Positions 1-63,863 of a stretch of 64,000 nt of DNA are shown piece after piece (the first letter of the stretch is position 1; each line of letters begins with the position of its first letter). The notes below the pieces were generated by a model. It saw only the letters and a program-made list of their open reading frames with translations. It had not been told where the DNA came from and made no database searches. Source of the DNA: Macrostomum lignano (lineage: Eukaryota); NCBI GenBank assembly GCA_002269645.1, contig NIVC01000093.1, positions 930,001 to 994,000 on the forward strand, in the 5' to 3' direction. The position numbers and the translations under genes were made by a program.

Positions 1-111
1 TATCTATCAGTGTAAAAATCACAGCAGTGCACAAGTAAGCAGCTGGTGAGCCAATACTAGAGTGGGACTTCTGGGGATTCATTTATCATTTACACAAATC
101 ACTGAACTCAC

Positions 112-4794: not shown

Positions 4795-5671
4795 AGAAAG
4801 TGTTTTTTTGCTAAAAAATTTCAAAACAAAAGTAAAACAAAGAATAATGTTTTTTTAGCAAAAACAGTTACTTTAAAGTTTAGTAAAACTCTTATAATTT
4901 TTAAAGAATATTTTCTCTAAAAAATATAATGTTCAAGCTACTTTACACTTGGAATACAATTTTTTAATTTACGTCGGCGTAGAATTGAAAAACTAGAAAA
5001 ATGAAATTTCATTTTTTGCACATTGGCTATGATCCGCATCAGTGTTGCCACCATTGCGATTTTTTATTGCTCAACAATTTTTAATCACTCAGCAATAATT
5101 TTGTCTATTGTGCTCATTTCCTGCAATTTTTTGTGGACACCAGTCCTTTCAACCTTTTTTTCAAGTACTGTGTTTCATTTTGTGCTCAATTTAAATGTCA
5201 AAATGTCATCAATATAGCATGAGGCTGTGCAAGCCTCCAGTTTTGAAGCTTGGCGAAAGGAGATTGAGCATTCTGCGGTCAAGCAAGCACTGAAGAAAGC
5301 TGCTGACAAAACAGCTCGGCAAAAGAGATAGCCAGAGTTTGGCGCTCGATCTGTCCTGCCAAAGGTTCCAAAGAAAAAATGAACATCCTCTGAAGAGCCT
5401 GCAGTTTTGCCTGACTAACGTGTGACTAGCCAAACAAAGATTCATGTAAAAGTATTTCTTCCCCTACAGTAACCGACATTGATCAACAATTAAAATATTA
5501 AAAGAATTCATTTCAGCTATATAGAGTTAAGAACAGATTCAGACAACTGGAATATAGCACAAAATTTAGTTGTAAAATTGTTATTACTCATCAGTGGTCG
5601 TGGGTAGCATCTTGTGTTTTAGTTGGTTGCTTGGGTTGGTTCCATAATGAACATCAGTAATCTATATTATA

Positions 5672-6284
5672 CACTCACCAACAGTCAAAACCACCACCCT
5701 ACCAAGAGAGGTGACTTCTCTCTCACCTCAACTTCAAGTGACGCAACTTGCACCATGGTATGGCTAAAGCTAGGTGTGAGTGAATGCAGGAGAGGGCAAT
5801 CAGGGAATGCAGGGGATGCCCCATCTGCTTCTTTCACCCCACATTAGACGGAGCAGGGTGGCTGGCGCAGTCGGAGTTCGCCTGACAATCTGCAGCAGAC
5901 GTCGATTTGCCTTGGCTATTGAGCCGCAGAGATCATGGTGCTGGCTGCCTGTGGCTGCGTGCTGAACACTACCAGTATCTTGGGACTTCGTTAACAGCGC
6001 TCGAATTGTTAAACGTGATAGGCCAAATTGGTGAGCAACTGCGCTGATGGATGCACCAGCTTTGAGCATGCCAACAGTGCGCCATCGTTCAGCATCTGTC
6101 ATATGCCTGACCATTGTCACGTATACTGTTGTACCCCCAACCCCAGTCCCTTTTGTACTCTCACCCTGGAATTCACTCTCACCCAGCTTTAGCCACGCTG
6201 TGGTGCAAGTTACGTCACTTGCAGTTGAGGTGAGAGAGAAGTCGCCTCTCTTGGTAGGGTGGCAGTTTCGACTGTTCCTGAGTG
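5672..6284 (-). mobile_element. Internally deleted Tc1-family transposon retaining the N-terminal HTH (ORF 5800-6120)
   Basis: TA|CACTC...GAGTG|TA with ~120-bp TIRs (5672-5790 vs 6165-6284). ORF MVRHMTDAERWRTVGMLKAGASISAVAHQFGLSRLTIRALLTKSQDTGSV is a Tc1/Tc3-type paired-like HTH. No DDE domain. Confidence 0.85.
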
Positions 6285-6859
6285 TATGTATGCCTGTCTT
6301 CCCTTAATAAAATGCTTGTTGTATTACTACTTACTTCACCTTTACTGATTCAGCGTAAATGAGAGTTGAATGCAGTTACTGCAAATTGTAGTAGTTTTTT
6401 TTAGTCAAATAGAATATGGAATTAGAAATAGAATGCTAAAAAAAGAAAGTTGTTTTTGCATACTGGCACCTTTTTCTCTATGACAAATAAGAAATATGTT
6501 CCTGCAATTTTTTTCTTATCCTGCGATAATTTCTTTGGTTGTTGTAGTGGCAACACTGATCTGCATTATGGCTTATTTTTACAGTTACAATTATATACTA
6601 ATTGATATACTTCAATCAATTATGCCTTAAAATGTGTCCAAAAGTAAATTTCACATAGGGCATATAGAGATTATACATGTTAGGTAACCTGTTGTAAGGT
6701 AAATTTTTCTGATCAGCTTTTGCTGTCTTACTATGCATTAAAACATTCTGTTAGGCCTTTGGTATTCACCTTGAATGCCACTTTGTGCATATTTTTTGTT
6801 TATATATGCTAGAATTTTTTCTTTTAATATCCACCTTCTTAGGTATAGAGCCTAGTCTA

Positions 6860-7031
6860 TATCATATATGCGCAACTTTGGGAATCACTAGGCCATTTCT
6901 ATTGGCAACACATACATGTAAGTTGCTATTGGCTGAAAGCAATCATGTGACTACTTTTCTGTCCAATAGCAACTTACATGTGTGTGTGTGTGTTGCCAAT
7001 AGAAATGGCCGAGTGAATCCTAAGGTTGCAC
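6860..7031. mobile_element. Foldback (hairpin) MITE
   Basis: TCACTAGGCCATTTCTATTGGCAACACATACATGTAAGTTGCTATTGG is mirrored by CCAATAGCAACTTACATGTG..TGTTGCCAATAGAAATGGCCGAGTGA. Confidence 0.7.
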
Positions 7032-8389
7032 CCAAGCATAGTCTATATTTCATTGTAAAAAAACTATATAGAATTTTGTAATTAGAAAGGTAGATGAAAT
7101 AGCTCATACCTAATTTTTAAAAGAATATAGATTCTCTCTAAGGAATCAAAGCAACTCAAATGCTAATGCACTTGTACATGTGCAACCTCTAAAATTCAAA
7201 CAGCTGTGCAAATTAGTTTTAACAAAAAATGTGACATCATTTTTGGCCAAAAATGCTACTTAAAAGAAACCCTAAAGCAAAATTAATGCAACTTTAGGTA
7301 AACAGCAGGAGTAACTATGACTGTCTTGTTAAGCTAAAATGCCTCATTATATACTTAGTACTACTTGGGTATTTATTTGGGTAGGAATTTTTGCAACTTA
7401 CCTTAGTTGGCCGCCAAATTGGCCAACTGTTGTGCATATATAAATGCACTTTTATCTTTATTGATTTGCCTTAAGGTTCAAGTATATTTTGGGCAAACAA
7501 AACAAAGAAATTCTGCTCTAGAATATACAAATGGCTTTAAAAATAGAATATAAACAAAAGTGGAACTTAAAGGATATAGGAGAGTGGCTTTGCCAAATAG
7601 ACAATATGAAAAAATATAGTAGTACATCAATGCATTCATAAGAGATGGTTTGTGTATACATTCTCTCAATGCATAATACTGGCATAGCAGATACCATGTA
7701 CCAGTTATATTGGCAAAAACATTTTGTCATTTTGGCAAAAGCCATTGAAAAAAAAACATTTTGGCTAGGCTTTTTTCATGGGTGCCAAGATGCAAAATTG
7801 CATCTATGAGCTATAGCGTCCAATTTTAAGATATGATTTTGATAGTCAAGATATCATATAGTATCCATATTGCATAAAAACCTAGCCTGCATTTTTTTGC
7901 TAATGCTAAGATGCTAAATCACATCCAAGGTCTATTTTGAAAGTGCAATTTTGAAAGTCAAGACTATATAGTGTCCTTATCATACAAAAAATAAATCCAG
8001 CATTTTTGTGAAAGTCATTTTGGCAAAAGTCAAATAGATATATCACAATTTGAAATTGTACCTAGTCTAAACAAAAGGACCATGTGTTTAAATACAATAG
8101 ACATTAAGTATGGTAAAAATGCTTTGTTTTTAGAAAGCAAAGTAGATATTATTTAGTGATTGGTCATTGGTTAAGAACAAATTCAACTAAAACCAAACTA
8201 GTTAAGCTAGTATACAAAGCTTGATGAGTGCTATTAAAATTTTATTTTATAATATATAATATATATTATCACATGTGTATATGATGATTTTAACATATAT
8301 ATGGATAGGAAGCAAGTAATAAAAAACTATATATGTATATATATATATATGATGTGATTTAGCGTGCAAAATGCTTCAATATAAATCTA

Positions 8390-8588
8390 CAGTGGTGGAT
8401 CTAGAATTTTATTCTGGAAGTGGTCCAAGTATTTGGGGTACCAGAATGAGTATGAGGGGCACCAATTTTTAAGCTAGGGGCACAATAATGCATATAGGGG
8501 CGAAAAATCAAGCTTATGGGTGCAATATGTTTTATTAAGCTATTTTGGGGGCAGCTGCCCTCCTGCCCCCTCCCTAAATCTGTCCCTG
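8390..8588. mobile_element. hAT-like MITE (CAG...CTG ends), degraded
   Basis: CAGTGGTGGATCTAG ... CTAAATCTGTCCCTG imperfect TIR; interior GGGGC blocks. No clean TSD. Confidence 0.5.
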
Positions 8589-8864
8589 TATATTCAATAT
8601 AATAGTCATCTTTCTTGCCTAAATCAAATGCCTCGATTTTGAAATGAAGATATGATTTTTTCCTATCTCTACAATTAGTATTTTCCATTAAATAGGCCTC
8701 GGAAAAAGTTCAGGATCTTTAGGTTTTAGTTGTACTATCATATATCATTAGGTTTAACAGATATTTTTGCTGTGCACTGTTTTTGAGACACAATGTATCT
8801 TTTAAGCTTGTTGTTCTTGTGTAATAGACAAAGATAGCAAAAATCCCTTTGTCCTTATTTTTAG

Positions 8865-9263: not shown

Positions 9264-10324
9264 CATTTCTAGCTACATTAAAATTCATATTTCCCGTTGA
9301 ATTTAGTGACAATTAACTGAAAGACATCCGAGAGGTATTTAGCACGCCTGTTAGAAAAACAAGTTGACTGATCTATTATTTAAATCAGTAATTAATAAGC
9401 TTGCATACGTTTCATATTAATGTGTATTTACAAATCCTGTTTTAGTTTCTATACATCTACTAATTGAGCCTTCTCCCTTGTTAGAAAAATGTGTTGGATT
9501 ACTGCAGTAAAGTAACATCATTTGTGCAGTGAAATAGATATAGATTAAATAAAAAACCGAGCGTGTAAATTAAAATACATTAGCGTTGTTAACTTACTTC
9601 GCTGAATTAAAAAGTCACTTCTTTATAGCTCAATTTTATTAACGCATCGTTGTCTTCTATTATTATTATTTTCTGCTTTTTACGCTCGTACTATAAGTAG
9701 GTTGTTAAGAAAGTCTATTTTTGTAGAATTTCGAGCTACCGGCCGGACTTGTCTAAATCTTGAAATGGTGAGTCCAACGAAATTTTTTGTAACGAAATTT
9801 ATTTGTCCTAATTAAATTTGCTTTTTTAAATGATGTCTGGTATTCGTACTGTCTGAGTCTTTCGTGCTGAGTACAAAGCTAATATGCTACTGACTATTGT
9901 GTAAGAAACAATATTTACATAGACGATTAAAAAAGCAGCTGGTTGTCAAGCAGTTAACTTTACCATTTTCCACCCCTTTCATTATCTCTATTTTAGTTCA
10001 ACATTAAAAGCGGTGAACAATCAAATCAATATGCCTGTGAGTATCAATAATTTGTCATGTCTCTTTCTTAAAACCATGATAAAGTTATTACATGATATTT
10101 TAAAAGCCGCTTGACATGATGTCTGATTGTATTCGTACTGTCTGATTTCACAGACTTGAAGATATTGATTCAATAGACAAATCTGATTTTTTAAACCGTA
10201 TATAGTACTTGCAGTACTTTTTATTGTAAAATTGACATTACAGCACTGATAATATTTTTTGTAAACATTTTTTAGGATCGACAGTACGTCTGCATGTAAT
10301 CCGTTTGTCGGCGCCTGGTTAAAG

Positions 10325-10700
10325 TAAGTCAGTCTATATTGTAGTCCAGTTTCTATTAAACACGTACAGTCAGTCTATATTGTAGTGCAGTTTCTATTAA
10401 ACACATGTACAGTCAGTCTATATTGTAGTGCCGTTTCTATTAAACACATGTACAGTCAGTCTATACTGTAGTGCCGTTTCTATTAAACACATGTACAGTC
10501 AGTCTATATTGTAGTGCCGTTTCTATTAAACACATGTACAGTCAGTCTATTTTGTAGTGCAGTTTCTATTAAACACATGTACAGTCAGTCTATTTTGTAG
10601 TGCAGTTTCAATTAAACACATTTACAGTCAGTCTATATTGTAGTGCAGTTTCTATTAAACACACGTACAGTCAGTCTATATTGTAGTGCAGTTTCTAAGT
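10325..10700. repeat. 43-bp minisatellite, ~8-9 copies
   Basis: Unit GTACAGTCAGTCTATATTGTAGTGCAGTTTCTATTAAACACAT recurs at 10407, 10450 and onward; one stray copy lies near 10880-10945. Confidence 0.95.
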
Positions 10701-11208
10701 TTCTAGTAAACACACTAGCAATCAGTGCCCCCGTGAGGGAGCCAAGAAAAATATAAAAAATTTTAATAAACTACATGTAGCTTCTGGCCTTGACCTTGAC
10801 ATCTCAGCAATTCCCCCCGTGAGCCTTGAGACTTCAGTAGTTCTCCCCAGGATGTTTTACATACGCAGTCATGGTACAGTTTCTAGTAAACACATGTACA
10901 GTCAGTCTTTATTGTAGTGCAGCTTTTATTCAACACATGTACAGCCTGTTGTACTTATCAATAGCATAAAGAACGAAGCGCTTTGGAAGGAATACACTTA
11001 GAAAAGTAATATTTCCACTTTTAATTGTATTCGTGCATGCAAATTCGCTGTCTATAAAAACGCAGTCGGACTGCACAGCATTAGGGTTCTAGCTGTGCAG
11101 ATTCCAATAATTGATTCGTCTCTTTATCCTTTCATATTTCCGCTTCACCTGCGTTTTAATTAATCCGTTTTACTCTAGGGTTTGTTATTATAACGTCATT
11201 GTTTCCTA

Positions 11209-19179: not shown

Positions 19180-19325
19180 CTGCAGGGCGGGCTTTAATGT
19201 TTAAACATGAAATTAAACTGCACCATACATTGTCCTTTGTTTCCGTTCATCTTTTGGTAGTTTAAAATGACATTATTTATAGCAATGCACCCTGCTCTAT
19301 CTGAGCAACTGCAGTGACTGCTCAC

Positions 19326-19810
19326 AATATTTAGTCCGTGCTTGCCATCCTTGCGCACGAACGCAGGCGACTGCGCCCTGCTGCCATTAGTCGATGACAA
19401 ATTGTGAAACGAATTGCTCAGACCGGATATTCGTCTCGCCTGCAGCGCGTTGAGGGCCTCCACGCTGCGCTCGGATTTTCGCTCGCCGCGCAGAATATTG
19501 TTGAGGCTCTCCTCCCAGCGTTTGAAATCGAAGCGATCCAACGGAGTCAGGTAGACACTCTTCTTCGAGTTGGAAAACCGTAGAGCCAAAGTGCGAACAT
19601 TCTGACTGCCAACGGCCTGCTGGAGTTGCTCCTTCTTGCTCGACGGAACCTCCTTGGAGCTCTCATCTAGCACCTCGAGCTCGTTGAAGTTCTCCAAGTT
19701 AACCTCGTATTCGGCGTTGCAAGCGCTGGACCGCTTCTTGAACATGTAGATTGTCTGGCACTTCAGCACGCCCCACAGCTTCTGACGCTTAGATTTCGGC
19801 TTTCGGTCAC
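19326..19810 (-). CDS. PH-domain protein, PH-domain exon
   Basis: KSKRQKLWGVLKCQTIYMFKK...EYEVNLENF...SVYLTPLDRFDFKRWEESLNNIL has the PH beta2-beta3 strands and C-terminal W-helix. Acceptor aatcag|, donor ATT|GTGAGC. Confidence 0.8.
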
Positions 19811-19914
19811 CTGATTGTTGATAGAGAAATGATTGTTTTTTTATGCGAGCCGGGTTATGGGGTTTCCTGTTTGTCTGGACGGGGGGGGCATTTTGAAAAC
19901 TCGAAACATGAAAC

Positions 19915-20130
19915 GTTTCACTTGTGAATGCCCCGTCTTTACTCAGGGCAGGCCCACCTGCCTCGGCCCAATCCCGGACTTTTCCAATGTTTTCAGGCCC
20001 GAGAATCTCTGCCAGCTCGTCCGCTACCAAAGGGCTACCGGGTAAGTAACCATCCACCTGGACTCTCCGAAAGGTGGACCAAGCTGCGGGCACCGCAGCA
20101 CCAGCTGCCCGTGGTCGCCAAGGGTTAACG
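19915..20130 (+). mobile_element. 5'-truncated non-LTR retrotransposon (LINE) 3' end, antisense in an intron
   Basis: [42 protein letters not shown] is closely related to the minus-strand copy at 54.3-54.5 kb. Confidence 0.7.
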
Positions 20131-25560: not shown

Positions 25561-25944
25561 CTTGAATGCTGTCTTTGGATGTTTTGTTTTTAGAGGGAAT
25601 GTCTGTTGTTTTTTATGAAGGCTTTATTTCGCTGTCTATTTGTTATTTGTAAAGAGCAAGGATTCTATCCAGATGTCCCCATCGGGAGGGCGAAGATTGC
25701 TAGTTAGTTACAGTTACTAAATTCACTCTGTCTGGAGACCTCTGTCAGAGACCTGTGTCGGGAGGTCTATGTCCAGACACCCTGTCTAGAAACCCAATCC
25801 AGAGACATTCAGGTGGTATCGTACCACATTGAAGTTTAGACAAATTAGCGCTTTAAATTTATCAATTCTATCAAAAAACCTTACTTGCAGGTGAGCTAAA
25901 TAATGCGAGTAACGATTAAATAGGAGCATCTGATTGGATACAGT

Positions 25945-26032
25945 AAGGTTAGGTTGGATTGAGTTAGGGTCAGGTTCTGATTAGGGTTAGGTTTAGGGTT
26001 AAGTCTATGGTTAAATCAGGGTTTGGGTCAGT
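25945..26032. repeat. Degenerate TTAGGG/TTAGG-like tract
   Basis: GTAAGGTTAGGTTGG..TTAGGGTCAGG..TTAGGGTTAGGTTTAGGGTT..; short and interstitial. Confidence 0.6.
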
Positions 26033-26169: not shown

Positions 26170-26498
26170 TCAGGCAGTTTCGCCAGAGTAGTTCTTCGGA
26201 ACCGGAACCAGATCGAATATCTCCATTGCGTCCCTACCGCCGCACTTTTCACCATACAAATAGTTGTAACATTGAACGTTGCATATCAAATTGAGAACAT
26301 TTCGGGACCTGATTTCATCTCCACAGAAGCACCGTCTACCATCAAACAGGCCAAAGTATTTCCAAGTTTTTTCCATCAAGCAGTGAGTGGCGCAGACTCG
26401 TTGGCTCATGTATTTGAAGTCTTCGTCAACTTCATATTTTAAAGCAAAATCTCTATGATCTCCATTCAGGTACCAAAGGTAGCATCCTTTCGAAGGCG
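26170..26498 (-). CDS. Poly-WSC protein, terminal WSC exon 6
   Basis: APSKGCYLWYLNGDHRDFALKYEVDEDFKYMSQRVCATHC...LVPVPKNYSGETA*; no TM or GPI signal follows. Confidence 0.85.
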
Positions 26499-27312
26499 CT
26501 TGAAAAAAATGGAACGAAAGTTAAGTAAAAGAATGCGAATGATGAGGCAGAGCCAGCAAGACTTACCGGGAATCATGGGCTGCATATCGATGGGTGCACC
26601 TGAAATTTACAGGTTATGATGGCGTTCTTGAGCTCAATAGTATACTATATTCACAAGCTGAAATTTTCAGATTGTAAAAAGTTGTTGTTTTATTGCCCCG
26701 AAAGACAATCTTGTTTTGAAGACAATCAATAAAAGTTCATACACTTTTCCGTACACTTTGAAAAAGCAACGCGTGAATAGCCTGCATAATGTGGCAAACT
26801 ATTTTTGTTTGTATAATTGCAAACAATCTCAACTCAATTTAGGAGGCTGCTCAGTTATTGCACACAATCACAGGTCGGTTTTGCAGACTGATTAGTTATT
26901 GCACACAATGACAGGTCGGTTTTGCAGACTGATTAGTTATTGCACACAATCACAGTTTGGTTTTGCAGACTGATTAGTTATTGCACACAATGACAGGTCG
27001 GTTTTGCAGACTGATTAGTTATTGCACACAATCACAGTTTGGTTTTGCAGACTGATTAGTTATTGCACACAATGACAGGTCGGTTTTGCAGACTGATTAG
27101 TTATTGCACACAATCACAGTTTGGTTTTGCAGACTGATTAGTTATTGCACACAATGACAGGTCGGTTTTGCAGACTGATTAGTTATTGCACACAATCACA
27201 GTTTGGTTTTGCAGACTGATTAGTTATTGCACACAATCACAGGTCGGTTTTGCAGACTGCTCAATATTAGCACACGATAACAGGTCGATTTTGATGCACT
27301 TAAATTTCTCAC

Positions 27313-27648
27313 CTTCAGGTTCGTAGACATCCAGAGCGCTTTGGCCGGAGTAGATTTTCGGTACCGGCTTCAGATCGAATACTTCTATTGCGCCCCTACC
27401 GCCGCACTTTTTATGATACAAATAGTTGAAACATGAAGCGTTGCAGTAATACTTGGGAATAATTTGTGATTGGATTTTATTTCCACAGAGGCACCGTCTA
27501 CCATCAGCCAGGCCAAAGTATTTCCATCTTGTTTCCATCAAGCAGTGAGAGGCGCAGACTCGTTGGCTCATGTATTTGAAGTCTTCTTTGATCTCTCTAT
27601 TAAGAACGGAATAACCATTCCCCCAATGGTAGCATCCCTTCGAAGGCG
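27313..27648 (-). CDS. Poly-WSC protein, WSC domain exon 5
   Basis: 336 nt, phase 1-1; MSQRVCASHCLMETRWKYFGLADGRRCLCGN. Confidence 0.9.
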
Positions 27649-28882
27649 CTTAAATGAAAAATGGACGAAAGTTAGGCAAAAAAAGGAATGCGAATGATGA
27701 AGCAGAGCTAGCAAGACTTACCGGGAATCATTGGCTGCATATCGATGGGTGCACCTGAAATTCATGAGGTTTTTATGGCGTTTTATATGACAACTATACA
27801 ATTAGCTCTTAATCTTTACAAGCTCTTCACAAACTGTTGTAAGCTTTGAAAAAGTTCAATATTTTGTCAATAAAAGTTCACTAGCTGGCTACAGAACATT
27901 TGAGCTTGACAAATAAAAGAATCTTGAATAGTCTTCATAATGTGACAGACTCATCATTCCTAAGACTGCTTAGTTATTGCACACAATGACAGGTCGGTTT
28001 TGTAGACTGATTAGTTATTGCACACAATCACAGTTTGGTTTTGCAGACTGATTAGTTATTGCACACAATGACAGGTCGGTTTTGCAGACTGATTAGTTAT
28101 TGCACACAATCACAGTTTGGTTTTGCAGACTGATTAGTTATTGCACACAATCACAGGTCGGTTTTGCAGACTGATTAGTTATTGCACACAATCACAGGTC
28201 GGTTTTGCAGACTGATTAGTTATTGCACACAATCACAGTTTGGTTTTGCAGACTGATTAGTTATTGCACACAATCACAGGTCGGTTTTGTAGACTGATTA
28301 GTTATTGCACACAATGACAGGTCAGTTTTGCAGACTGATTAGTTATTGCACACAATCACAGGTCAGTTTTGCAGACTGATTAGTTATTGCACACAATCAC
28401 AGGTCAGTTTTGCAGACTGATTAGTTATTGCACACAATCACAGGTCAGTTTTGCAGACTGATTAGTTATTGCACACAATCACAGGTCAGTTTTGCAGACT
28501 GATTAGTTATTGCACACAATGACAGGTCGGTTTTGCAGACTGATTAGTTATTGCACACAATCACAGTTTGGTTTTGCAGACTGATTAGTTATTGCACACA
28601 ATCACAGGTCGGTTTTGCAGACTGATTAGTTATTGCACACAATCACAGTTTGGTTTTGCAGACTGATTAGTTATTGCACACATTCACAGGTCAGTTTTGC
28701 AGACTGATTAGTTATTGCACACAATGACAGGTCAGTTTTGCAGACTGATTAGTTATTGCACACAATCACAGGTCAGTTTTGCAGACTGATTAGTTATTGC
28801 ACACAATCACAGGTCGGTTTTGCAGACTGCTCAATATTAGCACACGATAACAGGTCGATTTTGATGCACTTAAATTTCTCAC

Positions 28883-29218
28883 CTTCAGGTTCGTAGACAT
28901 CCAGAGCGCTTTGGCCGGAGTAGATTTTCGGTACCGGCTTCAGATCGAATACTTCTATTGCGCCCCTACCGCCGCACTTTTTATGATACAAATAGTTGAA
29001 ACATGAAGCGTTGCAGTAATACTTGGGAATAATTTGTGTTTGGATTTTATTTCCACAGAGGCACCGTCTACCATCAGCCAGGCCAAAGTATTTAGATCCT
29101 AATTCCATCAAGCAGTGAGAGGCGCAGACTCGTTGGCTCATGTATTTGAAGTCTTCTTTGATCTCTCTATTAAGAACGGAATAACCATTCCCCCAATGGT
29201 AGCATCCCTTTGAAGGCG
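28883..29218 (-). CDS. Poly-WSC protein, WSC domain exon 4
   Basis: 336 nt, phase 1-1, near-identical to exons 3 and 5. Confidence 0.9.
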
Positions 29219-30448
29219 CTTAAATGAAAAATGAACGAAATTTAGGCAAAAAAATGTGAATGATGAAGCAGAGCTAGCAAGACTTACCGGGAATCATTGG
29301 CTGCATATCGATGGGTGCACCTGAAATTCATGAGGTTTTTATGGCGTTTTATATGACAACTATACAATTAGCTCTTAATCTTTACAAGCTCTTCACAAAC
29401 TGTTGTAAGCTTTGAAAAAGTTCAATATTTTGTCAATAAAAGTTCACTAGCTGGCTACAGAACATTTGAGCTTGACAAATAAAAGAATCTTGAATAGTCT
29501 TCATAATGTGACAGACTCATCATTCCTAAGACTGCTTAGTTATTGCACACAATGACAGGTCGGTTTTGTAGACTGATTAGTTATTGCACACAATCACAGT
29601 TTGGTTTTGCAGACTGATTAGTTATTGCACACAATGACAGGTCGGTTTTGCAGACTGATTAGTTATTGCACACAATCACAGTTTGGTTTTGCAGACTGAT
29701 TAGTTATTGCACACAATCACAGGTCGGTTTTGCAGACTGATTAGTTATTGCACACAATCACAGGTCGGTTTTGCAGACTGATTAGTTATTGCACACAATC
29801 ACAGTTTGGTTTTGCAGACTGATTAGTTATTGCACACAATCACAGGTCGGTTTTGTAGACTGATTAGTTATTGCACACAATGACAGGTCAGTTTTGCAGA
29901 CTGATTAGTTATTGCACACAATCACAGGTCAGTTTTGCAGACTGATTAGTTATTGCACACAATCACAGGTCAGTTTTGCAGACTGATTAGTTATTGCACA
30001 CAATCACAGGTCAGTTTTGCAGACTGATTAGTTATTGCACACAATCACAGGTCAGTTTTGCAGACTGATTAGTTATTGCACACAATGACAGGTCGGTTTT
30101 GCAGACTGATTAGTTATTGCACACAATCACAGTTTGGTTTTGCAGACTGATTAGTTATTGCACACAATCACAGGTCGGTTTTGCAGACTGATTAGTTATT
30201 GCACACAATCACAGTTTGGTTTTGCAGACTGATTAGTTATTGCACACATTCACAGGTCAGTTTTGCAGACTGATTAGTTATTGCACACAATGACAGGTCA
30301 GTTTTGCAGACTGATTAGTTATTGCACACAATCACAGGTCAGTTTTGCAGACTGATTAGTTATTGCACACAATCACAGGTCGGTTTTGCAGACTGCTCAA
30401 TATTAGCACACGATAACAGGTCGATTTTGATGCACTTAAATTTCTCAC

Positions 30449-30783
30449 CTTCAGGTTCGTAGACATCCAGAGCGCTTTGGCCGGAGTAGATTTTCGGTAC
30501 CGGCTTCAGATCGAATACTTCTATTGCGCCCCTACCGCCGCACTTTTTATGATACAAATAGTTGAAACATGAAGCGTTGCAGTAATACTTGGGAATAATT
30601 TGTGTTTGGATTTTATTTCCACAGAGGCACCGTCTACCATCAGCCAGGCCAAAGTATTTAGATCCTAATTCCATCAAGCAGTGAGAGGCGCAGACTCGTT
30701 GGCTCATGTATTTGAAGTCTTCTTTGATCTCTCTATTAAGAACGGAATAACCATTCCCCAATGGTAGCATCCCTTTGAAGGCG
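30449..30783 (-). CDS. Poly-WSC protein, WSC domain exon 3 (1-nt frameshift as assembled)
   Basis: 335 nt instead of 336; C4 at ~30756-30759 where the sister copies have C5. Confidence 0.75.
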
Positions 30784-32013
30784 CTTAAATGAAAAATGAA
30801 CGAAATTTAGGCAAAAAAATGTGAATGATGAAGCAGAGCTAGCAAGACTTACCGGGAATCATTGGCTGCATATCGATGGGTGCACCTGAAATTCATGAGG
30901 TTTTTATGGCGTTTTATATGACAACTATACAATTAGCTCTTAATCTTTACAAGCTCTTCACAAACTGTTGTAAGCTTTGAAAAAGTTCAATATTTTGTCA
31001 ATAAAAGTTCACTAGCTGGCTACAGAACATTTGAGCTTGACAAATAAAAGAATCTTGAATAGTCTTCATAATGTGACAGACTCATCATTCCTAAGACTGC
31101 TTAGTTATTGCACACAATGACAGGTCGGTTTTGTAGACTGATTAGTTATTGCACACAATCACAGGTCGGTTTTGCAGACTGATTAGTTATTGCACACAAT
31201 GACAGGTCGGTTTTGCAGACTGATTAGTTATTGCACACAATCACAGGTCGGTTTTGCAGACTGATTAGTTATTGCACACAATCACAGTTTGGTTTTGCAG
31301 ACTGATTAGTTATTGCACACAATCACAGGTCAGTTTTGCAGACTGATTAGTTATTGCACACAATCACAGGTCGGTTTTGTAGACTGATTAGTTATTGCAC
31401 ACAATCACATGTCAGTTTTGCAGACTGATTAGTTATTGCACACATTCACAGGTCAGTTTTGCAGACTGATTAGTTATTGCACACAATCACAGGTCAGTTT
31501 TGCAGACTGATTAGTTATTGCACACAATCACAGGTCGGTTTTGCAGACTGATTAGTTATTGCACACTATCACAGTTTGGTTTTGCAGACTGATTAGTTAT
31601 TGCACACAATCACAGGTCGGTTTTGCAGACTGATTAGTTATTGCAGACAATCACAGTTTGGTTTTGCAGACTGATTAGTTATTGCACACAATCACAGTTT
31701 GGTTTTGCAGACTGATTAGTTATTGCACACAATCACAGTTTGGTTTTGCAGACTGATTAGTTATTGCACACAATCACAGGTCGGTTTTGCAGACTGATTA
31801 GTTATTGCACACAATCACAGTTTGGTTTTGCAGACTGATTAGTTATTGCACACAATCACAGGTCGGTTTTGCAGACTGATTAGTTATTGCACACATTCAC
31901 AGGTCGGTTTTGCAGACTGATTAGTTATTGCACACAATCACAGGTCGGTTTTGCAGACTGCTCAATATTAGCACACGATAAAAGGTCGATTCTGATGCAC
32001 TTAAATTTCTCAC

Positions 32014-32352
32014 CTTCAGGTTCGTAGACATCCAGAGCGCTTTGGCCGGAGTGGTTTTTCGGAACCGGCACCAGATCGAATACTTCCATGGCAGAACTAC
32101 CGCCGCACTTTTCAACGTCAGAAAAATTGAAACATGGAACGTTGCAGCCCAACTTGGGAACAATTGTTTTGCTATGGATTTTATTTCCACAGAGGCACCG
32201 TCTACCATCAGCCAGGCCAAAGTATTTAGATCCTAATTCCATCAAGCAGTGAGAGGCGCAGACTCGTTGGCTCATGTATTTGAAGTCTTCTTTGATCTCT
32301 CTATCAAGAACGTAATAACGATTCCCCCAAACGTAGCATCCCTTTGAAGGCG
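32014..32352 (-). CDS. Poly-WSC protein, WSC domain exon 2
   Basis: 339 nt open, phase 1-1; APSKGCYVWGNRYYVLDREIKEDFKYMSQRVCASHC...YEPEG. Confidence 0.9.
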
Positions 32353-33093
32353 CTTAAATGAAAAATGGACGAAAGTTAGGCAAAAAAAGGAATGCGAATG
32401 ATGAAGCAGAGCTAGCAAGACTTACCGGGAATCATTGGCTGCATATCGATGGGTGCACCTGAAATTCATGAGGTTTTTATGGCGTTTTATATGACAACTA
32501 TACCATTAGCTCTTAGTCTTACAAGCTCTTCACAAACTGTTGTAAGCTTTGAAAAAGTTCAATATTTTGTCAATAAAAGTTCACTAGCTGGCTACTGAAC
32601 ATTTGAGCTTGACAAATAAAAGAATCTTGAATAGTCTTCATAATGTGACAGACTCATCATTCCTAAGACTGCTTAGTTATTGCACACAATGACAGGTCGG
32701 TTTTGTAGACTGATTAGTTATTGCACACATTCACAGGTCGGTTTTGCAGACTGCTTAGTTATTGCACACAATGACAGGTCGGTTTTGTAGACTGATTAGT
32801 TATTGCACACAATCACAGTTTGGTTTTGCAGACTGATTAGTTATTGCACACAATCACAGTTTGGTTTTGCAGACTGATTAGTTATTGCACACAATCACAG
32901 GTCGGTTTTGCAGACTGATTAGTTATTGCACACAATCACAGGTCAGTTTTGTAGACTGATTAGTTATTGCACACATTCACAGGTCGGTTTTGCAGACTGA
33001 TTAGTTATTGCACACAATCACAGGTCGGTTTTGCAGACTGCTCAATATTAGCACACGATAAAAGGTCGATTCTGATGCACTTAAATTTCTCAC

Positions 33094-33429
33094 CTTCAGG
33101 TTCGTAGACATCCAGAGCGCTTTGGCCGGAGTGGTTTTTCGGAACCGGCACCAGATCGAATACTTCCATGGCAGAACTACCGCCGCACTTTTCAACATCA
33201 GAAAAATTGAAACATGGAACGTTGCAGTCCAACTTGGGAACAATTGTTTTGCTATCGATTTGATCTCCACAGAAGCACCGTCGACCATCAGCCAGGCCAA
33301 AGTATTTCTTTTTGCGCATCAAGCAGTGAGTAGCGCAGACTCCTTGGCTCATGCGGTCGAAGTCTTCTTTAACCTCCATGTCGAGAAGGGCGTCCTTCGG
33401 GCTCCATTGGTGGCATCCCTTCGAAGGCG
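33094..33429 (-). CDS. Poly-WSC protein, WSC domain exon 1
   Basis: KGCHQW...MSQGVCATHCLMRKKKYFGLADGRRCFCGD...CNVPC...KCGG..AMEVF matches the WSC 8-Cys pattern (GC..M...C...C...YFG...G..C.CG...C...C...CGG). 336 nt, phase 1-1. Confidence 0.9.
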
Positions 33430-33508
33430 CTTGAATTAAAAGCAGGCAGTGACAGGACAAAGGTTAAGCTAAGAATGTGAATGTTGCAGCAGAGCCAGCA
33501 AGACTTAC

Positions 33509-33541
33509 CGGGAATCATGGGCTCCAGATTTATGGGTGAAC
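33509..33541 (-). CDS. Poly-WSC protein, 33-nt microexon 1 (GSPINLEPMIP)
   Basis: gaatttcag|...CCCG|GTAAGT, phase 1-1. Homologous microexons (GAPIDMQPMIP) lie at 32426-32458, 30853-30885, 29288-29320, 27722-27754 and 26567-26599. Confidence 0.8.
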
Positions 33542-33694
33542 CTGAAATTCACAGGTTGTGATAGTGTTTTATAAGCTTATGACTTCACAGGTCGGTTTTG
33601 CAGACTGCTCAGAATCATTCGTAACACATGTATAGTCCGCGACGAGAAAAGGGCGGGATCAAGAGCCAGTTAGAGGGCAGCGAGAGAGGGAAAG

Positions 33695-34567
33695 CGAAAA
33701 CAGAGGGAGAGAAAACAGAGGGAGAGAAAACAGAGGGAGAGAAAACAGAGGGAGAGAGAGAGAAAACAGAGGGAGAGAAAACAGAGGGAGAGAAAACAGA
33801 GGGAGAGAAAGAGAAAACAGAGGGAGAGAAAACAGAGGGAGAGAAAACAGAAAAGGGCGTGAAAACAGAGGGAGAGAAAACAGAGGGAGAGAAAACAGAG
33901 GGAGAGAAAACAGAGGGAGAGAAAACAGAGGGAGAGAAAACAGAGGGAGAGAAAACAGAGGGAGAGAAAACAGAGGGAGAGAAAACAGAGGGAGAGAAAA
34001 CAGAGGGAGAGAAAACAGAGGGAGAGAAAACAGAGGGAGAGAAAACAGAAGAGGGCGAGAAAACAGAGGGCGAGAAAACAGGGAGAGAAAACAGGGAGAG
34101 AAAACAGAGGGAGAGAAAACAGAGGGAGAGAAAGAGAAAACAGAGGGAGAGAAAACAGAGGGAGAGAAAGAGAAAACAGAGGGAGAGAAAGAGAAAACAG
34201 AGGGAGAGAAAGAGAAAACAGAGGGAGAGAAAACAGAGGGAGAGAAAACAGAGGGAGAGAAAACAGAGGGAGAGAAAACAGAGGGAGAGAAAACAGAAGA
34301 GGGCGAGAAAACAGAGGGAGAGAAAACAGAGGGAGAGAAAACAGAGGGAGAGAAAACAGAAGAGGGCGAGAAAACAGAGGGAGAGAAAACAGAGGGAGAG
34401 AAAACAGAGGGAGAGAAAACAGAGGGAGAGAAAACAGAGGGAGAGAAAACAGAGGGAGAGAAAACAGAGGGAGAGAAAACAGAGGGAGAGAAAACAGAGG
34501 GAGAGAAAGAGAAAACAGAGGGAGAGAAAACAGAGGGAGAGAAAACAGAGGGCGAGAAAACAGAGGG
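33695..34567. repeat. 15-bp purine minisatellite (AAAACAGAGGGAGAG)n in intron 1 of the poly-WSC gene
   Basis: Directly visible; explains the EKTEG, RERKQ and SLCFL ORFs. Confidence 0.97.
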
Positions 34568-34832
34568 ATGCCAGTGCCAATAGCACACAATCACAGGTCA
34601 CTTTTGCAGACTGCTCAGCATTAGCACACGTAATAGTTCGCGACGAGAGGAAGGCGAGAGTAATGAGCCAATCAGAGGGCAGCGAGGGAAAGAGAGAAAA
34701 TAACAAGACTGAACAAGACAGACGGGAGAGAAAACAGAGTAAGCAGAGACAAGTGAAGGTGAACTAAAAAATGCCTAAGAAGTCGCGACATCACACAATC
34801 ACAGGTCAATTCTGAGACAACAAATCTCTTAC

Positions 34833-34896
34833 CTTTGGCTTCGTAGAATTCCTGAGCAGTCACAAGGATTATCAGAGTCAGTGCTGAGCACAGCAT
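34833..34896 (-). CDS. Poly-WSC secreted protein, exon 1 (signal peptide)
   Basis: MLCSALTLIILVTAQEFYEAK G|GTAAGA has a hydrophobic core and a likely cleavage site near TA-Q; phase 1. Confidence 0.8.
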
Positions 34897-35787
34897 GATG
34901 CAGAATTTATGTTGCTATACCGAACTTCTTTATTAAGCTTTGAATGGGTCCTTGGTTTGTCAAAAGTTGAGCTGAGAGGCGCAGTCGAGCCTCGCGTCTT
35001 TTTATGCAGCAGAAGTGTTTAGCCATAGACGCTGCAGTTCGTCCCTGCATGTACAGTGCATGCTTGCTTTATAGTCTCTGACCCTTCCTATGAGTCTGAG
35101 TGCAAGCAGTGATAAAATAAAAGTACAAGTGACTGATGGTTCGACAATTAGCGCGAAATGTTAAACTCTGCAGCTGTTGAGCTTTTACTTGAGCCTAATT
35201 CTCACAGGTTATTCGTCCACACCCTGCGTGAATATAGGCGGGTTACAGAACCTGTATAAGCTGCTGCTGCATGTGACGCTCAACTCTATTAGAGTTAGCA
35301 GCTAGACTCTATCAATCTATCCAAGAGCTGCACCAAACTGCCGGTGTTCTACTGAAAGTAGACAGTCAAACTCAGAAATAATAAAACTAAACACTTTTTC
35401 TATGTCTAAGATGATTGGTTGTTCAAAATATGTCTTACAAGGTCTTTAAAATGGCCTGGGTGTCGGTTTTGAGCTGTTTGTCTGACAAGAAAAACTGGAT
35501 CTGTTGACAAAAATCACCTTGAAAATGTCAGGTAAGTCGGCGTAGGTTGTCTGCGGTTTGTTTGATCAATTAGAGCAGGGAGTGTAATGAGTCTAAATGC
35601 CCAAAATTAAAAGCTGTTTCACTAGAATGCATCTAGAAAGCATGTTGTGTAGAGAATGTCAGACTATTGAAAATGTCTGGCTCGATAAAGACATCGTACA
35701 CCAAGTAAATGCGTTTGAAAAGAACTACGCTTAGTTGGAATAGTTAAGCCGAATTATAAACTTAGCGACATGTATTTAATATCTCAG

Positions 35788-36140: not shown

Positions 36141-36749
36141 CAGCCAACTGCCCAGCAGTGCAAGTGGGTTCGCGTCTGGTTCCTCAATTTTTCACAGCGA
36201 AGTCTCGGTGATTTTTAAATGACAAATGAAACATGCTGAGGCTGAGACTCTGGCGCACTTTAAGCGACATGGGCACACAACCGGCGAGAGGCATTGCTGC
36301 CCATTCCGCCGACTCCTCTGAGCAGGCAAACAAGCGTGCAGATACGTACACAGTCATACCTACAGGCACACACTCACAGGAGTGTACGGCGGCCCGGGTT
36401 TCATTTATCGTTAGTCATGTACACTGCACTGTGTGCGCCAGGATTCCAGCCAGGGCCGCTGGTCTACATGAGTTGAAGGCATAGCCTTAGCAATGAGCAG
36501 TCCCATCTGACAGTAAAGTCACTATTTTCTGTAAATCCTTGCAGAAGATTGAGCAAAATCATCAGCAAAATAATTTGGTCGCAGGTGCAAAATTCTCAAC
36601 GCCTGCAAGCTTGAAAGCTTTGCGAAATCAAAGACACAAGGAGACAGGCAAGAAGCGATTGCATGCTCCCCAGATGCTTTGCTCGTCCCAATAATAGCTG
36701 AGAAATATTTTTCCAACAAATTTACTGAACGATTAAAACAGCTGAAACA

Positions 36750-38125
36750 TCTCCACCTGTAGCAACCCACTTCTCCATGGCTTGAGCATCCCGTCATCTC
36801 CGCCTGTAGCAACCCACTTCTCCCATGGCTTGAGCATCCCGTCATCTCCGCCTGTAGCAACCCACTTCTCCCATGGCTTGAGCATCCCGTCATCTCCGCC
36901 TGTAGCAACCCACTTCTCCCATGGCTTGAGCATCCCGTCATCTCCACCTGTAGCAACCCACTTCTCCCATGGCTTGAGCATCCCGTCATCTCCACCTGTA
37001 GCAACCCACTTCTCCCATGTCTTGAGCATCCCGTCATCTCCACCTGTAGCAACCCACTTCTCCTATGGCTTGAGCATCCCGTCATCTCCGCCTGTAGCAA
37101 TCCACTTCTCCCATGGCTTGAGCATCCCGTCATTTCCATCCGTAGAAACCCACTTCTCCCATGGCTTGAGCATCCCGTCATCTCCACCTGTAGCAACCCA
37201 CTTCTCCCATGGCTTGAGCATCCCGTCATCTCCGCCTGTAGCAACCCACTTCTCCCATGGCTTGAGCATCCCGTCATCTCCGCCTGTAGCAACCCACTTC
37301 TCCCATGGCTTGAGCATCCCGTCATCTCCGCCTGTAGCAACCCACTTCTCCCATGGCTTGAGCATCCCGTCATCTCCGCCTGTAGCAACCCACTTCTCCC
37401 ATGGCTTGAGCATCCCGTCATCTCCGCCTGTAGCAACCCACTTCTCCCATGGCTTGAGCATCCCGTCATCTCCGCCTGTAGCAACCCACTTCTCCCATGG
37501 CTTGAGCATCCCGTCATCTCCGCCTGTAGCAACCCACTTCTCCCATGGCTTGAGCATGCCGTCATCTCCACCTGTAGCAACCCACTTCTCCCATGGCTTG
37601 AGCATCCCGTCATCTCCGCCTGTAGCAACCCACTTCTCCCATGGCTTGAGCATCCCGTCATCTCCGCCTGTAGCAACCCACTTCTCCTATGGCTTGAGCA
37701 TCCCGTCATCTCCGCCTGTAGCAATCCACTTCTCCCATGGCTTGAGCATCCCGTCATTTCCATCCGTAGAAACCCACTTCTCACATGGCTTGAGCATCCC
37801 GTCATCTCCACCTGTAGCAACCCACTTCTCACATGGCTTGAGCACCCCGTCATCTCCACCTGTAGCAACCCACTTCTCCCATGGCTTGAGCATCCCGTCA
37901 TCTCCACCTGTAGCAACCCACTTCTCCCATGTCTTGAGCATCCCGTCATCTCCACCTGTAGCAACCAACCCACTTCTCACATGGCTTGAGCACCCCGTCA
38001 TCTCCACCTGTAGCAACCCACTTCTCCCATGGCTTAAGCATCCCGTCATCTCCACCTGTAGCAACCCACTTCTCCTATGGCTTGAGCATCCCGTCATCTC
38101 CACCTTTAGCAACCCACTTCTCCCA
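36750..38125. repeat. 48-bp minisatellite, ~28 copies
   Basis: Unit CCATGGCTTGAGCATCCCGTCATCTCCGCCTGTAGCAACCCACTTCTC; a variant unit (..CATTTCCATCCGTAGAAACC..) recurs at ~37130 and ~37755. Confidence 0.97.
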
Positions 38126-39662: not shown

Positions 39663-40313
39663 TTAGTCAAACGCGGTCCGCTGCAGAACCAACAATGAGC
39701 GATCGGTAATGCCCAATTGTTGCAAAGTCTTTGTCATGTCAGCTTCACCAAATGTGACCCTGTCCGCTGGTGACACAACCTCCAGCGGTTCGCTACTCAA
39801 GCTCAGCTTTGCAGAGTCAGCTCTCTCGCCGCTGCGCACGTCCCGACAGAGGACGCCCAGCTGCGTGTCGGACGAATAGCTGCACTGACGACGCGCACCG
39901 TCTGGAGTTCGAATCGCCAGGTAAAGCAACTGCTCTTGCTTGCTAGCTAATTGTTTCTGTGCTTGTTTTTTATGCGATGTTGGGTGCTGCTCTCTATGAA
40001 TGTTTTGTTCTTTCTGTTGCGCAATATCCGGCAGTACATTGTACTTTTGAGCCGACAAAGGTCGTTCAGGCCGCGACTGGTCCAAGCTGGACCGTCGCCT
40101 CATCGGCTGAGCCAGCGGCAGAGGCGAGGTCGGGGCGGCTCTGGGCGACGGGTGGGACGGTTGAGGAACCCGCGATCTGGACGGCTTCTTTGTCGCCGCA
40201 ATGGGAATAATGCCGAAGCGATCGAACCTATTGGGAAGAGACTGCATCGCCAAGGCTGAGGTCCGACTGGCCCGTCCGCTTCGCAGCTGCAAATCGCGGG
40301 AAGCGGCCGACAT
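39663..40313 (-). CDS. UBXN10: UBX domain-containing protein 10 (ciliary p97/VCP adaptor), single coding exon
   Basis: KYNVLPDI, LLYLAIRTPDGAR and DMTKTLQQLGITDRSLLVL parallel the UBXN10 motifs KYPVLPSI, LLLAVRSPTGQR and DLTKSLQECRIPHKSVL; C-terminal UBX domain. Confidence 0.8.
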   Translation of the reverse strand: MSAASRDLQLRSGRASRTSALAMQSLPNRFDRFGIIPIAATKKPSRSRVPQPSHPSPRAAPTSPLPLAQPMRRRSSLDQSRPERPLSAQKYNVLPDIAQQKEQNIHREQHPTSHKKQAQKQLASKQEQLLYLAIRTPDGARRQCSYSSDTQLGVLCRDVRSGERADSAKLSLSSEPLEVVSPADRVTFGEADMTKTLQQLGITDRSLLVLQRTAFD

Positions 40314-45490: not shown

Positions 45491-47588
45491 ATGGCCCAGC
45501 CGGACTTGAAGTCCAGGTATTTTCGCCGAATCCATTGTTTTTAGTCGTATTATTATGTACCTTTAGAAAGGCTGCTTAGTGAATAATATAAATTAATTTA
45601 ATATATATTACCGCAGGGTCATCGACACTCCCAGATCTTCGGGTGAAGCAGATGGTAACGAAAAAGGCCTTCTGAAGCTGGTCCAGGAACGATTCGTTCA
45701 GGCAATTGAAAATAACAGGTTTAACTTAAATTCAATATATATACTTCTCTTTATGTGCTACTAATGCGCGCAGAATTGATTAATTAATGTACAACGATTT
45801 AACAATCAACGCAGTGACGTGTCATGGAAATCTCTTCAAGACACTCTGCTGGAGTTGCACCACCTGAGGCACGTGCTTCACGGCCGTCCAGAGGTAACTT
45901 CTCAAAGCATACTCAATTCAACTGAGCATTAGCTACTCAATTCAACTGAGCATTAGCTACTCAATTCAACTGAGCATTAGCTACTCAATTCAACTGAGGC
46001 ATTAGCTCCTTAATTCAACTGAGCATTAGCTACTCAATTCAACTGAGCATTAGCTCCTCAATTCAACTGAGCATTAGCTACTCAATTCAACTGAGCATTA
46101 GCTACTCAATTCAACTGAGCATAGCTCCTCAATTCAACTGAGCATTAGCTACTCAATTCAACTGAGCATTAGCTACTCAATTCAACTGAGGCATTAGCTC
46201 CTCAATTCAACTGAGGCATTAGCTACTCAATTCAACTGAGCATAGCTCCTCAATTCAACTGAGCATTAGCTCCTTAATTCAACTGAGCATTAGCTACTCA
46301 ATTCAACTGAGCATTAGCTCCTCAATTCAACTGAGCATTAGCTACTCAATTCAACTGAGCATTAGCTACTCAATTCAACTGAGCATAGCTCCTCAATTCA
46401 ACTGAGCATTAGCTACTCAATTCAACTGAGCATTAGCTACTCAATTCAACTGAGCATTAGCTCCTCAATTCAACTGAGCATTAGCTACTCAATTCAACTG
46501 AGCATTAGCTACTCAATTCAACTGAGCATAGCTCCTCAATTCAACTGAGCATTAGCTACTCAATTCAACTGAGCATTAGCTACTCAATTCAACTGAGCAT
46601 TAGCTACTCAATTCAACTGAGCATTAGCTACTCAATTCAACTGAGCATTAGCTACTCAATTCAACTGAGCATTAGCTACTCAATTCAACTGAGCATAGCT
46701 CCTCAATTCAACTGAGCATTAGCTACTCAATTCAACTGAGTATTAGCTACTCAATTCAACTGAGTATTAGCTACTCAATTCAACTGAGCATTAGCTACTC
46801 AATTCAACTGAGCATTAGCTCCTCAATTCAACTGAGCATTAGCTACTCAATTCAACTGAGCATTAGCTACTCAATTCAACTGAGCATTAGCTCCTCAATT
46901 CAACTGAGCATTAGCTACTCAATTCAACTGAGCATTAGCTACTCAATTCAACTGAGTATTAGCTACTCAATTCAACTGAGCATTAGCTACTCAATTCAAC
47001 TGAGTATTAGCTACTCAATTCAACTGAGTATTAGCTACTCAATTCAACTGAGCATTAGCTACTCAATTCAACTGAGCATTAGCTCCTCAATTCACTACAA
47101 TTCGCTAGCCAACTGAACTAATTAAGTCATAAATTATAATCAGAGTCGCGCCTCTCGCCCCCTGCCAGGTGGAGCACTACCTGGCAAGAATACTTGGCCT
47201 GCTGGATCGCCAACCGAATGAGCCGGCTACTTCGGCGATGCTGGAGACCCTGCAGCAGGTGTTCCCGGCCGAGATAGCCCGCCTGTCTGCATCCAAGCAG
47301 CCGCTGCCTCCGCCGCCAGTGTTGAACGCTTCAACAAAAATCACCACATCATCGTCACCTCGTGTCCGGCGATTTCAGAAGCGAGTTCAGCAGCAGGATG
47401 AAGATCCAGACAAGCCGCTGTTCCAGCTGCCCGAGCTCAGCGACTCTACCTACGCGCCCGTGCCGGAACCGTTGACGGTGCGTCGGCTGCAGGCGTCCAT
47501 TGCCGACGTGATCGCCGAGACCTGCTTGCGTAAGTCTGCATTGGAATCGGTATAGGAGTGGTCATTCAGTCAGTCAGACTGACTGACT

Positions 47589-63826: not shown

Positions 63827-63863
<37 letters not shown>

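Follow-up and report, generated by a model that had tools for sequence, protein, structure and literature searches.

Tandem WSC domains in a gene for a predicted secreted protein of Macrostomum lignano: probable origin from the mature part of a one-WSC gene

In fungi, WSC domains serve as lectin modules that bind glucans (PMC9252488; PMC9024836), and fungi also have secreted lectins with several such domains, e.g. the WSC-domain glucan-binding proteins of Serendipita indica (PMC9252488, which cites Wawra 2019 for WSC3). The gene described here is found in a 64,000 nucleotide (nt) stretch of Macrostomum lignano DNA from assembly GCA_002269645.1, called the window, where it occupies positions 26170-34896 of the minus strand and consists of a 64-nt signal peptide (SP) exon followed by six pairs of a 33-nt microexon and a WSC exon. 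It probably arose from a three-exon gene with one WSC domain by head-to-tail duplication of the part that encodes the mature protein.

The predicted product resembles the fungal multi-WSC lectins in consisting essentially of tandem WSC domains and in its predicted secretion. It differs in that it belongs to another kingdom with no orthology shown, that gene structure and linker origin are unrelated, and that its glycan binding is putative whereas the fungal proteins are multivalent glycan binders. KREMEN1/2, polycystin-1 and WSCD1/2 share the domain family, and KREMEN1 is the best structural match, but in these proteins a single WSC domain is part of a multidomain membrane or Golgi protein (kringle, CUB, transmembrane (TM), sulfotransferase). 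Yeast Wsc1 (PDB 7PZ2; PMC9024836) has the eight-cysteine WSC fold in common with the window units but spans the membrane as a sensor that combines one WSC domain with a Ser/Thr-rich stalk and a cytoplasmic tail. WSC is the only domain of the window protein above the Pfam threshold, and the absence of kringle, CUB, TM, REJ/PKD and sulfotransferase sequence places it outside the Kremen, polycystin-1 and WSCD groups.

Repeat proteins can grow by intragenic tandem duplication or by duplication of phase-1 exons, as in the Hp2 allele of haptoglobin. The window gene is like the Hp2 type in that tandem duplication within the gene would have multiplied a domain and unequal crossing-over altered the copy number, and its units are phase 1-1 symmetric. 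The founding breakpoints differ, since they are within coding sequence, in exon 1 and in the last exon, and not in introns, and the new internal exon therefore took its splice donor and its linker codons from the SP exon. The unit boundary is found 25 nt inside an exon, which sets the gene apart from classical exon duplication with intronic breakpoints and no chimeric exon. A literature search on the WSC domain in Macrostomum or flatworms, on the gene identifiers given below and on chimeric-exon or signal-peptide duplications found nothing relevant.

Exon junctions and the predicted product

The earlier, sequence-only reading of this locus is partly confirmed. It had proposed an SP exon and six microexon-WSC pairs, a distinct terminal exon ending ..SGETA, six WSC domains, and a product with no TM segment or glycosylphosphatidylinositol (GPI) tail. 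All the exons were located (Table 1), with the start codon ATG at 34896, GT..AG splice sites in 12 of 12 introns, and a terminal exon that ends ..VPVPKNYSGETA before the stop codon TGA at 26170-26172. The Pfam family WSC (PF01822) was found six times in the whole protein (E=9.6e-57, 189.6 bits), and units 1 and 6 scanned singly gave 50.0 and 40.6 bits, above the curated cut-off of 27.8 bits. The claim that all six units are intact in phase 1 fails at unit 3, where the WSC exon is 335 nt and not 336, a frameshift that had been overlooked.

The tail of the SP exon is repeated at the end of every internal WSC exon. The last 25 nt of the SP exon (34833-34857), which are the source of the inter-unit linker, are identical to the internal tails at 19/25 positions (binomial P 1.6e-7), so the exon-end match reported earlier was reproduced. 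Scoring of the 25-mers before every GTRAG site of the window (269 on the two strands) gave 19 for the five internal WSC donors and 12 for the next best site. With a single 2-nt indel the match continues for about 55 nt of the intron, and its local score of 48 compares with 16.9 ± 2.3 for 2000 shuffles (z~13). The shared intron start GACCTGT.AT.GTGTG, also part of the earlier reading, is present after the SP exon and units 3-5, but units 1 and 2 have GACCTTT.

The internal exons change partner at a sharply defined position. An internal exon follows the terminal exon up to ..TCCGGCCAAA (..GGCCAAA) and the SP exon from GCTCTGG.. on, the boundaries being 2 nt apart. The terminal exon ends ..GGC GAA ACT GCC TGA, the SP exon ends ..GTG ACT GCT CAG GAA TTC TAC GAA GCC AAA G/GT (the slash marks the splice site) and the internal exon ends ..GGC CAA AGC GCT CTG GAT GTC TAC GAA CCT GAA G/GT. 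The pentanucleotide ACTGC is common to the SP exon and the terminus, precisely at the switch point. The possibility that the terminal exon is a decayed internal exon was rejected, as the sequence after the stop compared with internal tail plus intron scored 16 vs 17.9 ± 2.4 for shuffles.

The 49 cysteines are distributed as 6 x 8 plus one in the SP, and the cysteine columns are invariant across the unit alignments. The closest sequence matches in the PDB are yeast Wsc1 (the best, E=1.1e-8) and KREMEN1. An AlphaFold2 (AF2) model of unit 1 has a mean predicted local distance difference test (pLDDT) score of 60, with most 10-residue blocks of the core at 63-78, residues 83-99 below 50 and low confidence for the N-terminal 12 residues of the unit. 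This model, of moderate confidence, shows the PAN/apple-like WSC fold, and its top Foldseek matches are KREMEN1 (5FWS/5FWV) and Wsc1 (7PZ2), with probability 1.00 and E values of 3.5e-5 to 3e-4. The sole hydrophobic stretch is residues 1-14; outside the SP the peak 19-residue hydropathy is below 1 and the C-terminus ..PKNYSGETA is polar, in agreement with the proposed lack of a TM segment and of a hydrophobic GPI-signal tail. The hydrophobic core of the SP, LCSALTLIILV, reaches a Kyte-Doolittle value of 2.84 over its 11 residues, and the V-T-A sequence agrees with the -3/-1 rule. Such features point to a secreted, multivalent, beads-on-a-string product of WSC domains and linkers of about 35 residues, without a membrane anchor and with putative carbohydrate (glycan) binding. 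The lectin, mucus or immune-recognition role suggested earlier is likewise putative.

Single-WSC paralogs and the origin of the repeat unit

An exhaustive HMMER scan with the SP and unit 1 identified two single-WSC proteins of M. lignano, PAA81925.1 (121 amino acids, aa) and PAA91226.1, encoded by Mlig018627.g1 and Mlig028911.g1 at the loci L003 and L004; the PAA91226.1 gene appears to lie on the same contig as the window. Paralogs of this kind, with a similar N-terminus after cleavage and with the shared exon-end and intron-start homology, had been predicted from the window alone. Their SP exon is identical to that of the window at 63/64 nt and the SP-exon peptide is the same, MLCSALTLIILVTAQEFYEAKG. 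It is followed by a 33-nt microexon (ASIDMQPMIP) and one WSC exon ending in ..VPVPKNNSGETA or ..SGKTA before the stop. Identity to the window gene is 81% in the promoter with its TATAAAG box (250-nt 5' flank, measured against L003), 83% in intron 2, 74% in the WSC exon and 75% in the 3' untranslated region (3'UTR). The paralogs are thus like the window gene in promoter type, SP exon, microexon, WSC exon, SGETA or SGKTA terminus and 3'UTR; they are unlike it in having one unit, no chimeric exon and one 41-bp monomer vs arrays, and their WSC cores are strongly diverged (74% nt identity or less).

Intron 1 of the paralogs is 244 nt long, as measured in L003, the L004 gene being near-identical outside the WSC core. 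It starts with GTGAGAGATTTGTGTTGTCCCAAGCT, followed by a single GACCTGTGATTATGTGCTATTACTGAGCAGTCTGC copy, and its 3' part aligns with the unique 3' part of the inter-unit introns of the window, so that the homology is found at both ends. The 41-bp unit is tandemly amplified in every inter-unit intron, with 77 matches in the window, all within 26883-33026, and occurs only once in each paralog locus. This homology and the single monomer together indicate that each inter-unit intron is a copy of intron 1. On these alignments the repeat unit starts 25 nt short of the end of exon 1 and extends until just ahead of the stop codon. A dispersed mobile element was rejected as the source of the 41-bp repeat, which is confined to this gene in the window and found once in paralog intron 1.

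A more distant paralog gives the polarity. PAA92753.1 (P0016, locus L005) has two WSC domains and a 64-nt phase-1 SP exon that is identical to that of the window at 42/64 positions, 14/25 in the tail, but its WSC exons are without an SP-type tail. The tail was therefore part of the SP exon first, which makes the internal exons the chimeric ones. The sequence ..VYNVTG at the end of the first WSC domain of PAA92753.1 was considered as a second SP-tail fusion and rejected, because VY is the canonical WSC end and the residues that follow (NVTGKIIPLLP) match a microexon (GAPIDMQPMIP), which makes it a different junction. This gene (L005 6001-7106) has two tiny exons of 15 and 9 nt after the SP exon, and its first WSC exon is continuous with the microexon equivalent (..VYNVTGKIIPLLP/gtaagt), with no intron, before the APSKGC exon. 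It joins its two WSC units in a different way, which is probably independent.

The earlier proposal that each repeat equals one mature ancestral protein is supported by the breakpoints, the single-WSC paralogs, the intron 1 homology and the polarity of the SP tail. The ancestor would have been a compact three-exon gene of a kind that the genome still has, with an SP exon, a 33-nt microexon and a WSC exon that contains the stop. The duplicated segment would reach from the codon at the predicted cleavage site in exon 1 (..VTA/QEFYEAKG) to the last codons before the stop in exon 3 (..SGETA), giving a chimeric exon composed of a WSC body and the last 25 nt of the SP exon. This exon would use the splice donor of the SP exon, and the intron after it would be copied from intron 1. 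A single tandem duplication within the gene, with breakpoints in exon 1 and exon 3 at the ACTGC microhomology, would be the simplest route. Unequal crossing-over and gene conversion would then have raised the number of units from two to five or six, while a 41-bp piece of intron 1 would have grown into a minisatellite in every inter-unit intron. The unit coincides with the mature protein probably because a working secreted protein results only from in-frame junctions that leave out the hydrophobic core and the stop.

Exactly the same junction would result if the whole single-WSC gene was first duplicated in tandem and the copies were later fused in frame by a deletion of about 1.4 kb, which took away the stop codon and 3'UTR, the intergenic DNA, the promoter and 39 nt at the 5' end of the SP exon. 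Single-WSC family genes do occur head-to-tail about 1.3 kb apart, in L003 (WSC genes at 4143-8729 and 10001-10734, further WSC exons at 768-1103), but this route needs two events where one suffices, and two adjacent complete genes of this subtype were not seen in the loci retrieved. It is rather unlikely, although the sequence does not discriminate between it and a single intragenic duplication, which explains the structure as well. A reversed polarity, in which an older multi-WSC gene lost its 5' end, acquired a signal exon in which new sequence was joined to the 25-nt tail of an internal WSC exon and later collapsed to give the single-WSC genes, is extremely unlikely. Arrays can collapse through unequal crossing-over, and the L003 single-WSC core is at a synonymous divergence (dS) of 0.28 from the sixth WSC exon of the window (W6), about as close as W6 to W5 (0.34). 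It does not, however, predict that the homology to the terminal exon ends where that to the SP begins, it is at odds with a paralog intron 1 that holds a single monomer and no array, and the SP exon of PAA92753.1 has the homologous tail while its WSC exons lack it. Multi-copy peptide precursors are known in which each unit is one mature product, and as one unit here corresponds to one mature protein the chain could be a polyprotein cut in its linkers into single WSC proteins equal to the ancestral one. The linkers (VPVPKNHSGQSALDVYEPEGAPIDMQPMIPAPSKG) have no dibasic or other obvious convertase site, the K/R pairs all being within the WSC domains, which makes such processing quite improbable.

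Other points weigh against the derivation from a one-WSC gene by duplication of the mature part. The present junction AGCGCT differs from the postulated ACTGCT at 2/6 positions, so a use of the microhomology can only be inferred. Cleavage between VTA and Q is predicted from the -3/-1 rule alone, and the SP is without a basic n-region and only 14 residues long. The single-WSC paralogs are mosaics affected by gene conversion and are therefore ancestral-like in architecture, not demonstrably the ancestor. The window copy is frameshifted in unit 3 and, if this is real, encodes just two intact domains. No orthologue was found outside M. lignano with a word-indexed protein search, in which the 757-aa repaired protein retrieved its own cluster only and a 141-aa single unit M. 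lignano only, so that the duplication cannot be dated.

L003 and L004 are collinear homeologous loci with 94-96% background identity. In their single-WSC gene the promoter, SP exon, intron 1, microexon, intron 2, the last 40 nt and 3'UTR are ~98-100% identical, and a WSC core of ~250 nt (L003 10412-10690, L004 9926-10200) cannot be aligned (36-54% per 50-nt segment). Paralogs ~8 kb upstream share 82.5% identity with the L004 core, and W6 shares 74% with the L003 core; the difference looks like a cassette replacement by gene conversion. In L004 (9920-9930) the AG acceptor of the WSC exon has lost its G (aattcaa/cgcc vs attcaag/cgcc in L003), and the annotated protein of 80 aa begins at an internal Met; this copy may be a pseudogene or an assembly error. 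The RNA-seq-based PAA81925.1 model takes an acceptor 54 nt inside the WSC exon (L003 10412-10465, ..cgcaaag/CTGCG) and skips the first cysteine, and the older model A0A1I8G3A9 uses the full WSC exon and skips the microexon. The conflict may reflect alternative splicing, or one model may be wrong. A gene for a secreted CAP-domain protein (CRISP/antigen-5-type) adjoins the single-WSC cluster at L003 14835-16454 and L004 12103-13682. Intron 1 of the window gene holds a 15-bp GAAAACAGAGGGAGA array of ~56 copies at 33696-34568, flanked by two diverged copies of ~90 nt (33590-33680 and 34570-34690) that start with a 41-bp-type element.

Table 1. Positions in the window of the promoter element, exons and introns of the tandem-WSC gene.
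Feature	Position	Strand	Remarks
TATAAAG box, promoter	35067..35074	-	~170 nt 5' of ATG
SP exon, 64 nt, phase 1	34833..34896	-	MLCSALTLIILVTA/QEFYEAK-G; ATGCTG...GCCAAAG then GTAAGAG
Intron 1, 1291 nt	33542..34832	-	First ~55 and last ~36 nt homologous to inter-unit introns and paralog intron 1
Microexon 1, 33 nt	33509..33541	-	SPINLEPMIP
WSC exon 1, 336 nt	33094..33429	-	SP-exon-derived tail is the last 25 nt, 33094-33118
Inter-unit intron 1-2, 635 nt	32459..33093	-	41-bp minisatellite at 32666-33040
Microexon 2	32426..32458	-	
WSC exon 2, 339 nt	32014..32352	-	Recombinant, W4-like/W1-like
Inter-unit intron 2-3, 1128 nt	30886..32013	-	With 41-bp minisatellite
Microexon 3	30853..30885	-	
WSC exon 3, 335 nt	30449..30783	-	Frameshifted
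Inter-unit intron 3-4, 1128 nt	29321..30448	-	With 41-bp minisatellite
Microexon 4	29288..29320	-	
WSC exon 4, 336 nt	28883..29218	-	
Inter-unit intron 4-5, 1128 nt	27755..28882	-	With 41-bp minisatellite
Microexon 5	27722..27754	-	
WSC exon 5, 336 nt	27313..27648	-	
Inter-unit intron 5-6, 713 nt	26600..27312	-	41-bp minisatellite at 26853-27293
Microexon 6	26567..26599	-	
Terminal WSC exon, coding part	26170..26498	-	..NYSGETA + TGA; ancestral C-terminus kept; 3'UTR homologous to that of the paralogs

Homeologous copies and the frameshift in unit 3

Two further contigs, L001 and L002, show synteny with the window (96-98.5% identity), and on each of them the same gene has five units. A UBX-domain gene lies upstream in both and an SSNA1-like gene is present in L001. 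The three copies of the locus are explained by the redundancy of the DV1 assembly, which is due to extra large chromosomes (PMC5730564). The L001 gene is intact, and the exon model applied there translates exactly to PAA87879.1 (635 aa). That annotation was built from RNA-seq with StringTie/TACO and mapped de novo transcripts, and the open reading frames (ORFs) were called with TransDecoder (PMC5730564), so the exact match gives indirect transcript support for the chain of SP exon and repeated microexon-WSC pairs.

The number of units (6/5/5) and the lengths of introns and minisatellites vary among the three syntenic loci. The second WSC exon of the window (W2) is a clean recombinant of W4 and W1, W4-like in its 5' half (42/43 W4-type sites in alignment columns 8-189) and W1-like in its 3' half (32/33 W1-type sites in columns 191-312), and changes over only once, near column 190. 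Units 3-5 are near-identical and have introns of identical length, 1128 nt. It is nevertheless very improbable that a repeat-rich PacBio assembly artificially created some or most of the units. The genome is highly repetitive and its assembly redundant (PMC5730564), and the exons of units 3 and 4 are identical except for a homopolymer. On the other side, three separately assembled contigs show 5, 5 and 6 units in one order, adjacent units differ by substitutions (40 between units 3 and 4, 14 between units 4 and 5) and not by random indels, and the five-unit chain equals a transcript-based protein.

The frameshift is caused by one missing base in WSC exon 3, G4 for G5 (C4 on the plus strand, 30756-30759); units 4 and 5 retain G5. 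As assembled, the ORF has 305 codons and runs into a TGA at 30704-30706. The protein deposited for the window locus, PAA91241.1 (BOX15_Mlig009486g1, 473 aa), starts with MLPLGN.. just past the frameshift and spans units 3-6 only, with 100% identity. If G4 is genuine, the window copy would be a null or truncated allele with a two-WSC product of 305 residues or subject to nonsense-mediated decay, and L001 would supply the full protein. This is a serious possibility that falls somewhat short of an even chance. The identical shift from G5 to G4 is found in the third WSC unit of L002 (~10007-10018), which has five units and is of another haplotype than the six-unit window, and it outlasted Pilon polishing. 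Homopolymer indels are, on the other hand, the typical PacBio error, short-read polishing is unreliable in multi-copy sequence, and L002 is apart from G4 the same haplotype as L001, which has G5 in unit 3. The ratio of nonsynonymous to synonymous divergence (dN/dS) does not separate a real truncating allele from a homopolymer error.

Genomic surroundings and significance

Further WSC exons were not found elsewhere in the window, so the multi-WSC gene lies outside any local WSC cluster, unlike its single-WSC relatives. Neighbouring ORFs at 79-1194(-), 19194-20093(-), 39663-40313(-), 55848-57182(+) and 62694-63830(+) have matches to WD40, PH (weak), UBX and dynein heavy chain (DHC_N2, AAA_7). 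About 150 nt downstream of the stop codon, at 25930-26020, is a tract of degenerate, TTAGGG-like sequence of telomere type. The window has more than 20 separate minisatellite arrays with periods of 4 to 57 bp, e.g. 36748-38125 (48 bp x 28.6), 45910-47094 (24 bp x 49.5) and 61284-62636 (23 bp x 58.8), which fits the published 15% of simple and tandem repeats in the M. lignano genome.

In kind this is an ordinary gene for a predicted secreted, lectin-like protein with internal duplication, and its product is already deposited as a hypothetical protein, but the origin of the gene is unusually legible. Still recognizable are the type of gene it came from, the two breakpoints, the splice donor taken over from the SP exon and the subsequent unequal crossovers. 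It is a clean example of a known process and adds no new mechanism, function or kind of system. As such it can serve as a teaching and benchmark case for the evolution of repeat proteins and for the building of gene models in a flatworm genome rich in repeats, with its missed microexons and its models split by frameshifts.

The dN/dS values are 0.6-1.3 among the units and against the L003 paralog, from few sites and with the cysteine scaffold conserved, which suggests relaxed or diversifying evolution of the WSC cores. The WSC genes of M. lignano could form a fast-diversifying recognition repertoire, immune or reproductive, with conserved scaffolds (promoter, signal exon, introns, C-terminal tail, UTR), WSC cores of dN/dS near 1 that are swapped as cassettes between paralogs, and a copy number that varies between homeologous chromosomes. 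The hints are the L003 and L004 scaffolds of ~99-100% identity around an unalignable 250-nt core, the dN/dS range and the 5, 5 and 6 units, and on these the idea is speculative and has a fairly small chance of being right. The six-unit gene may then be one product of a general mechanism that combines concatenation of mature units with cassette swapping. If the family is a diversifying lectin repertoire, the biological interest of the gene would be greater.

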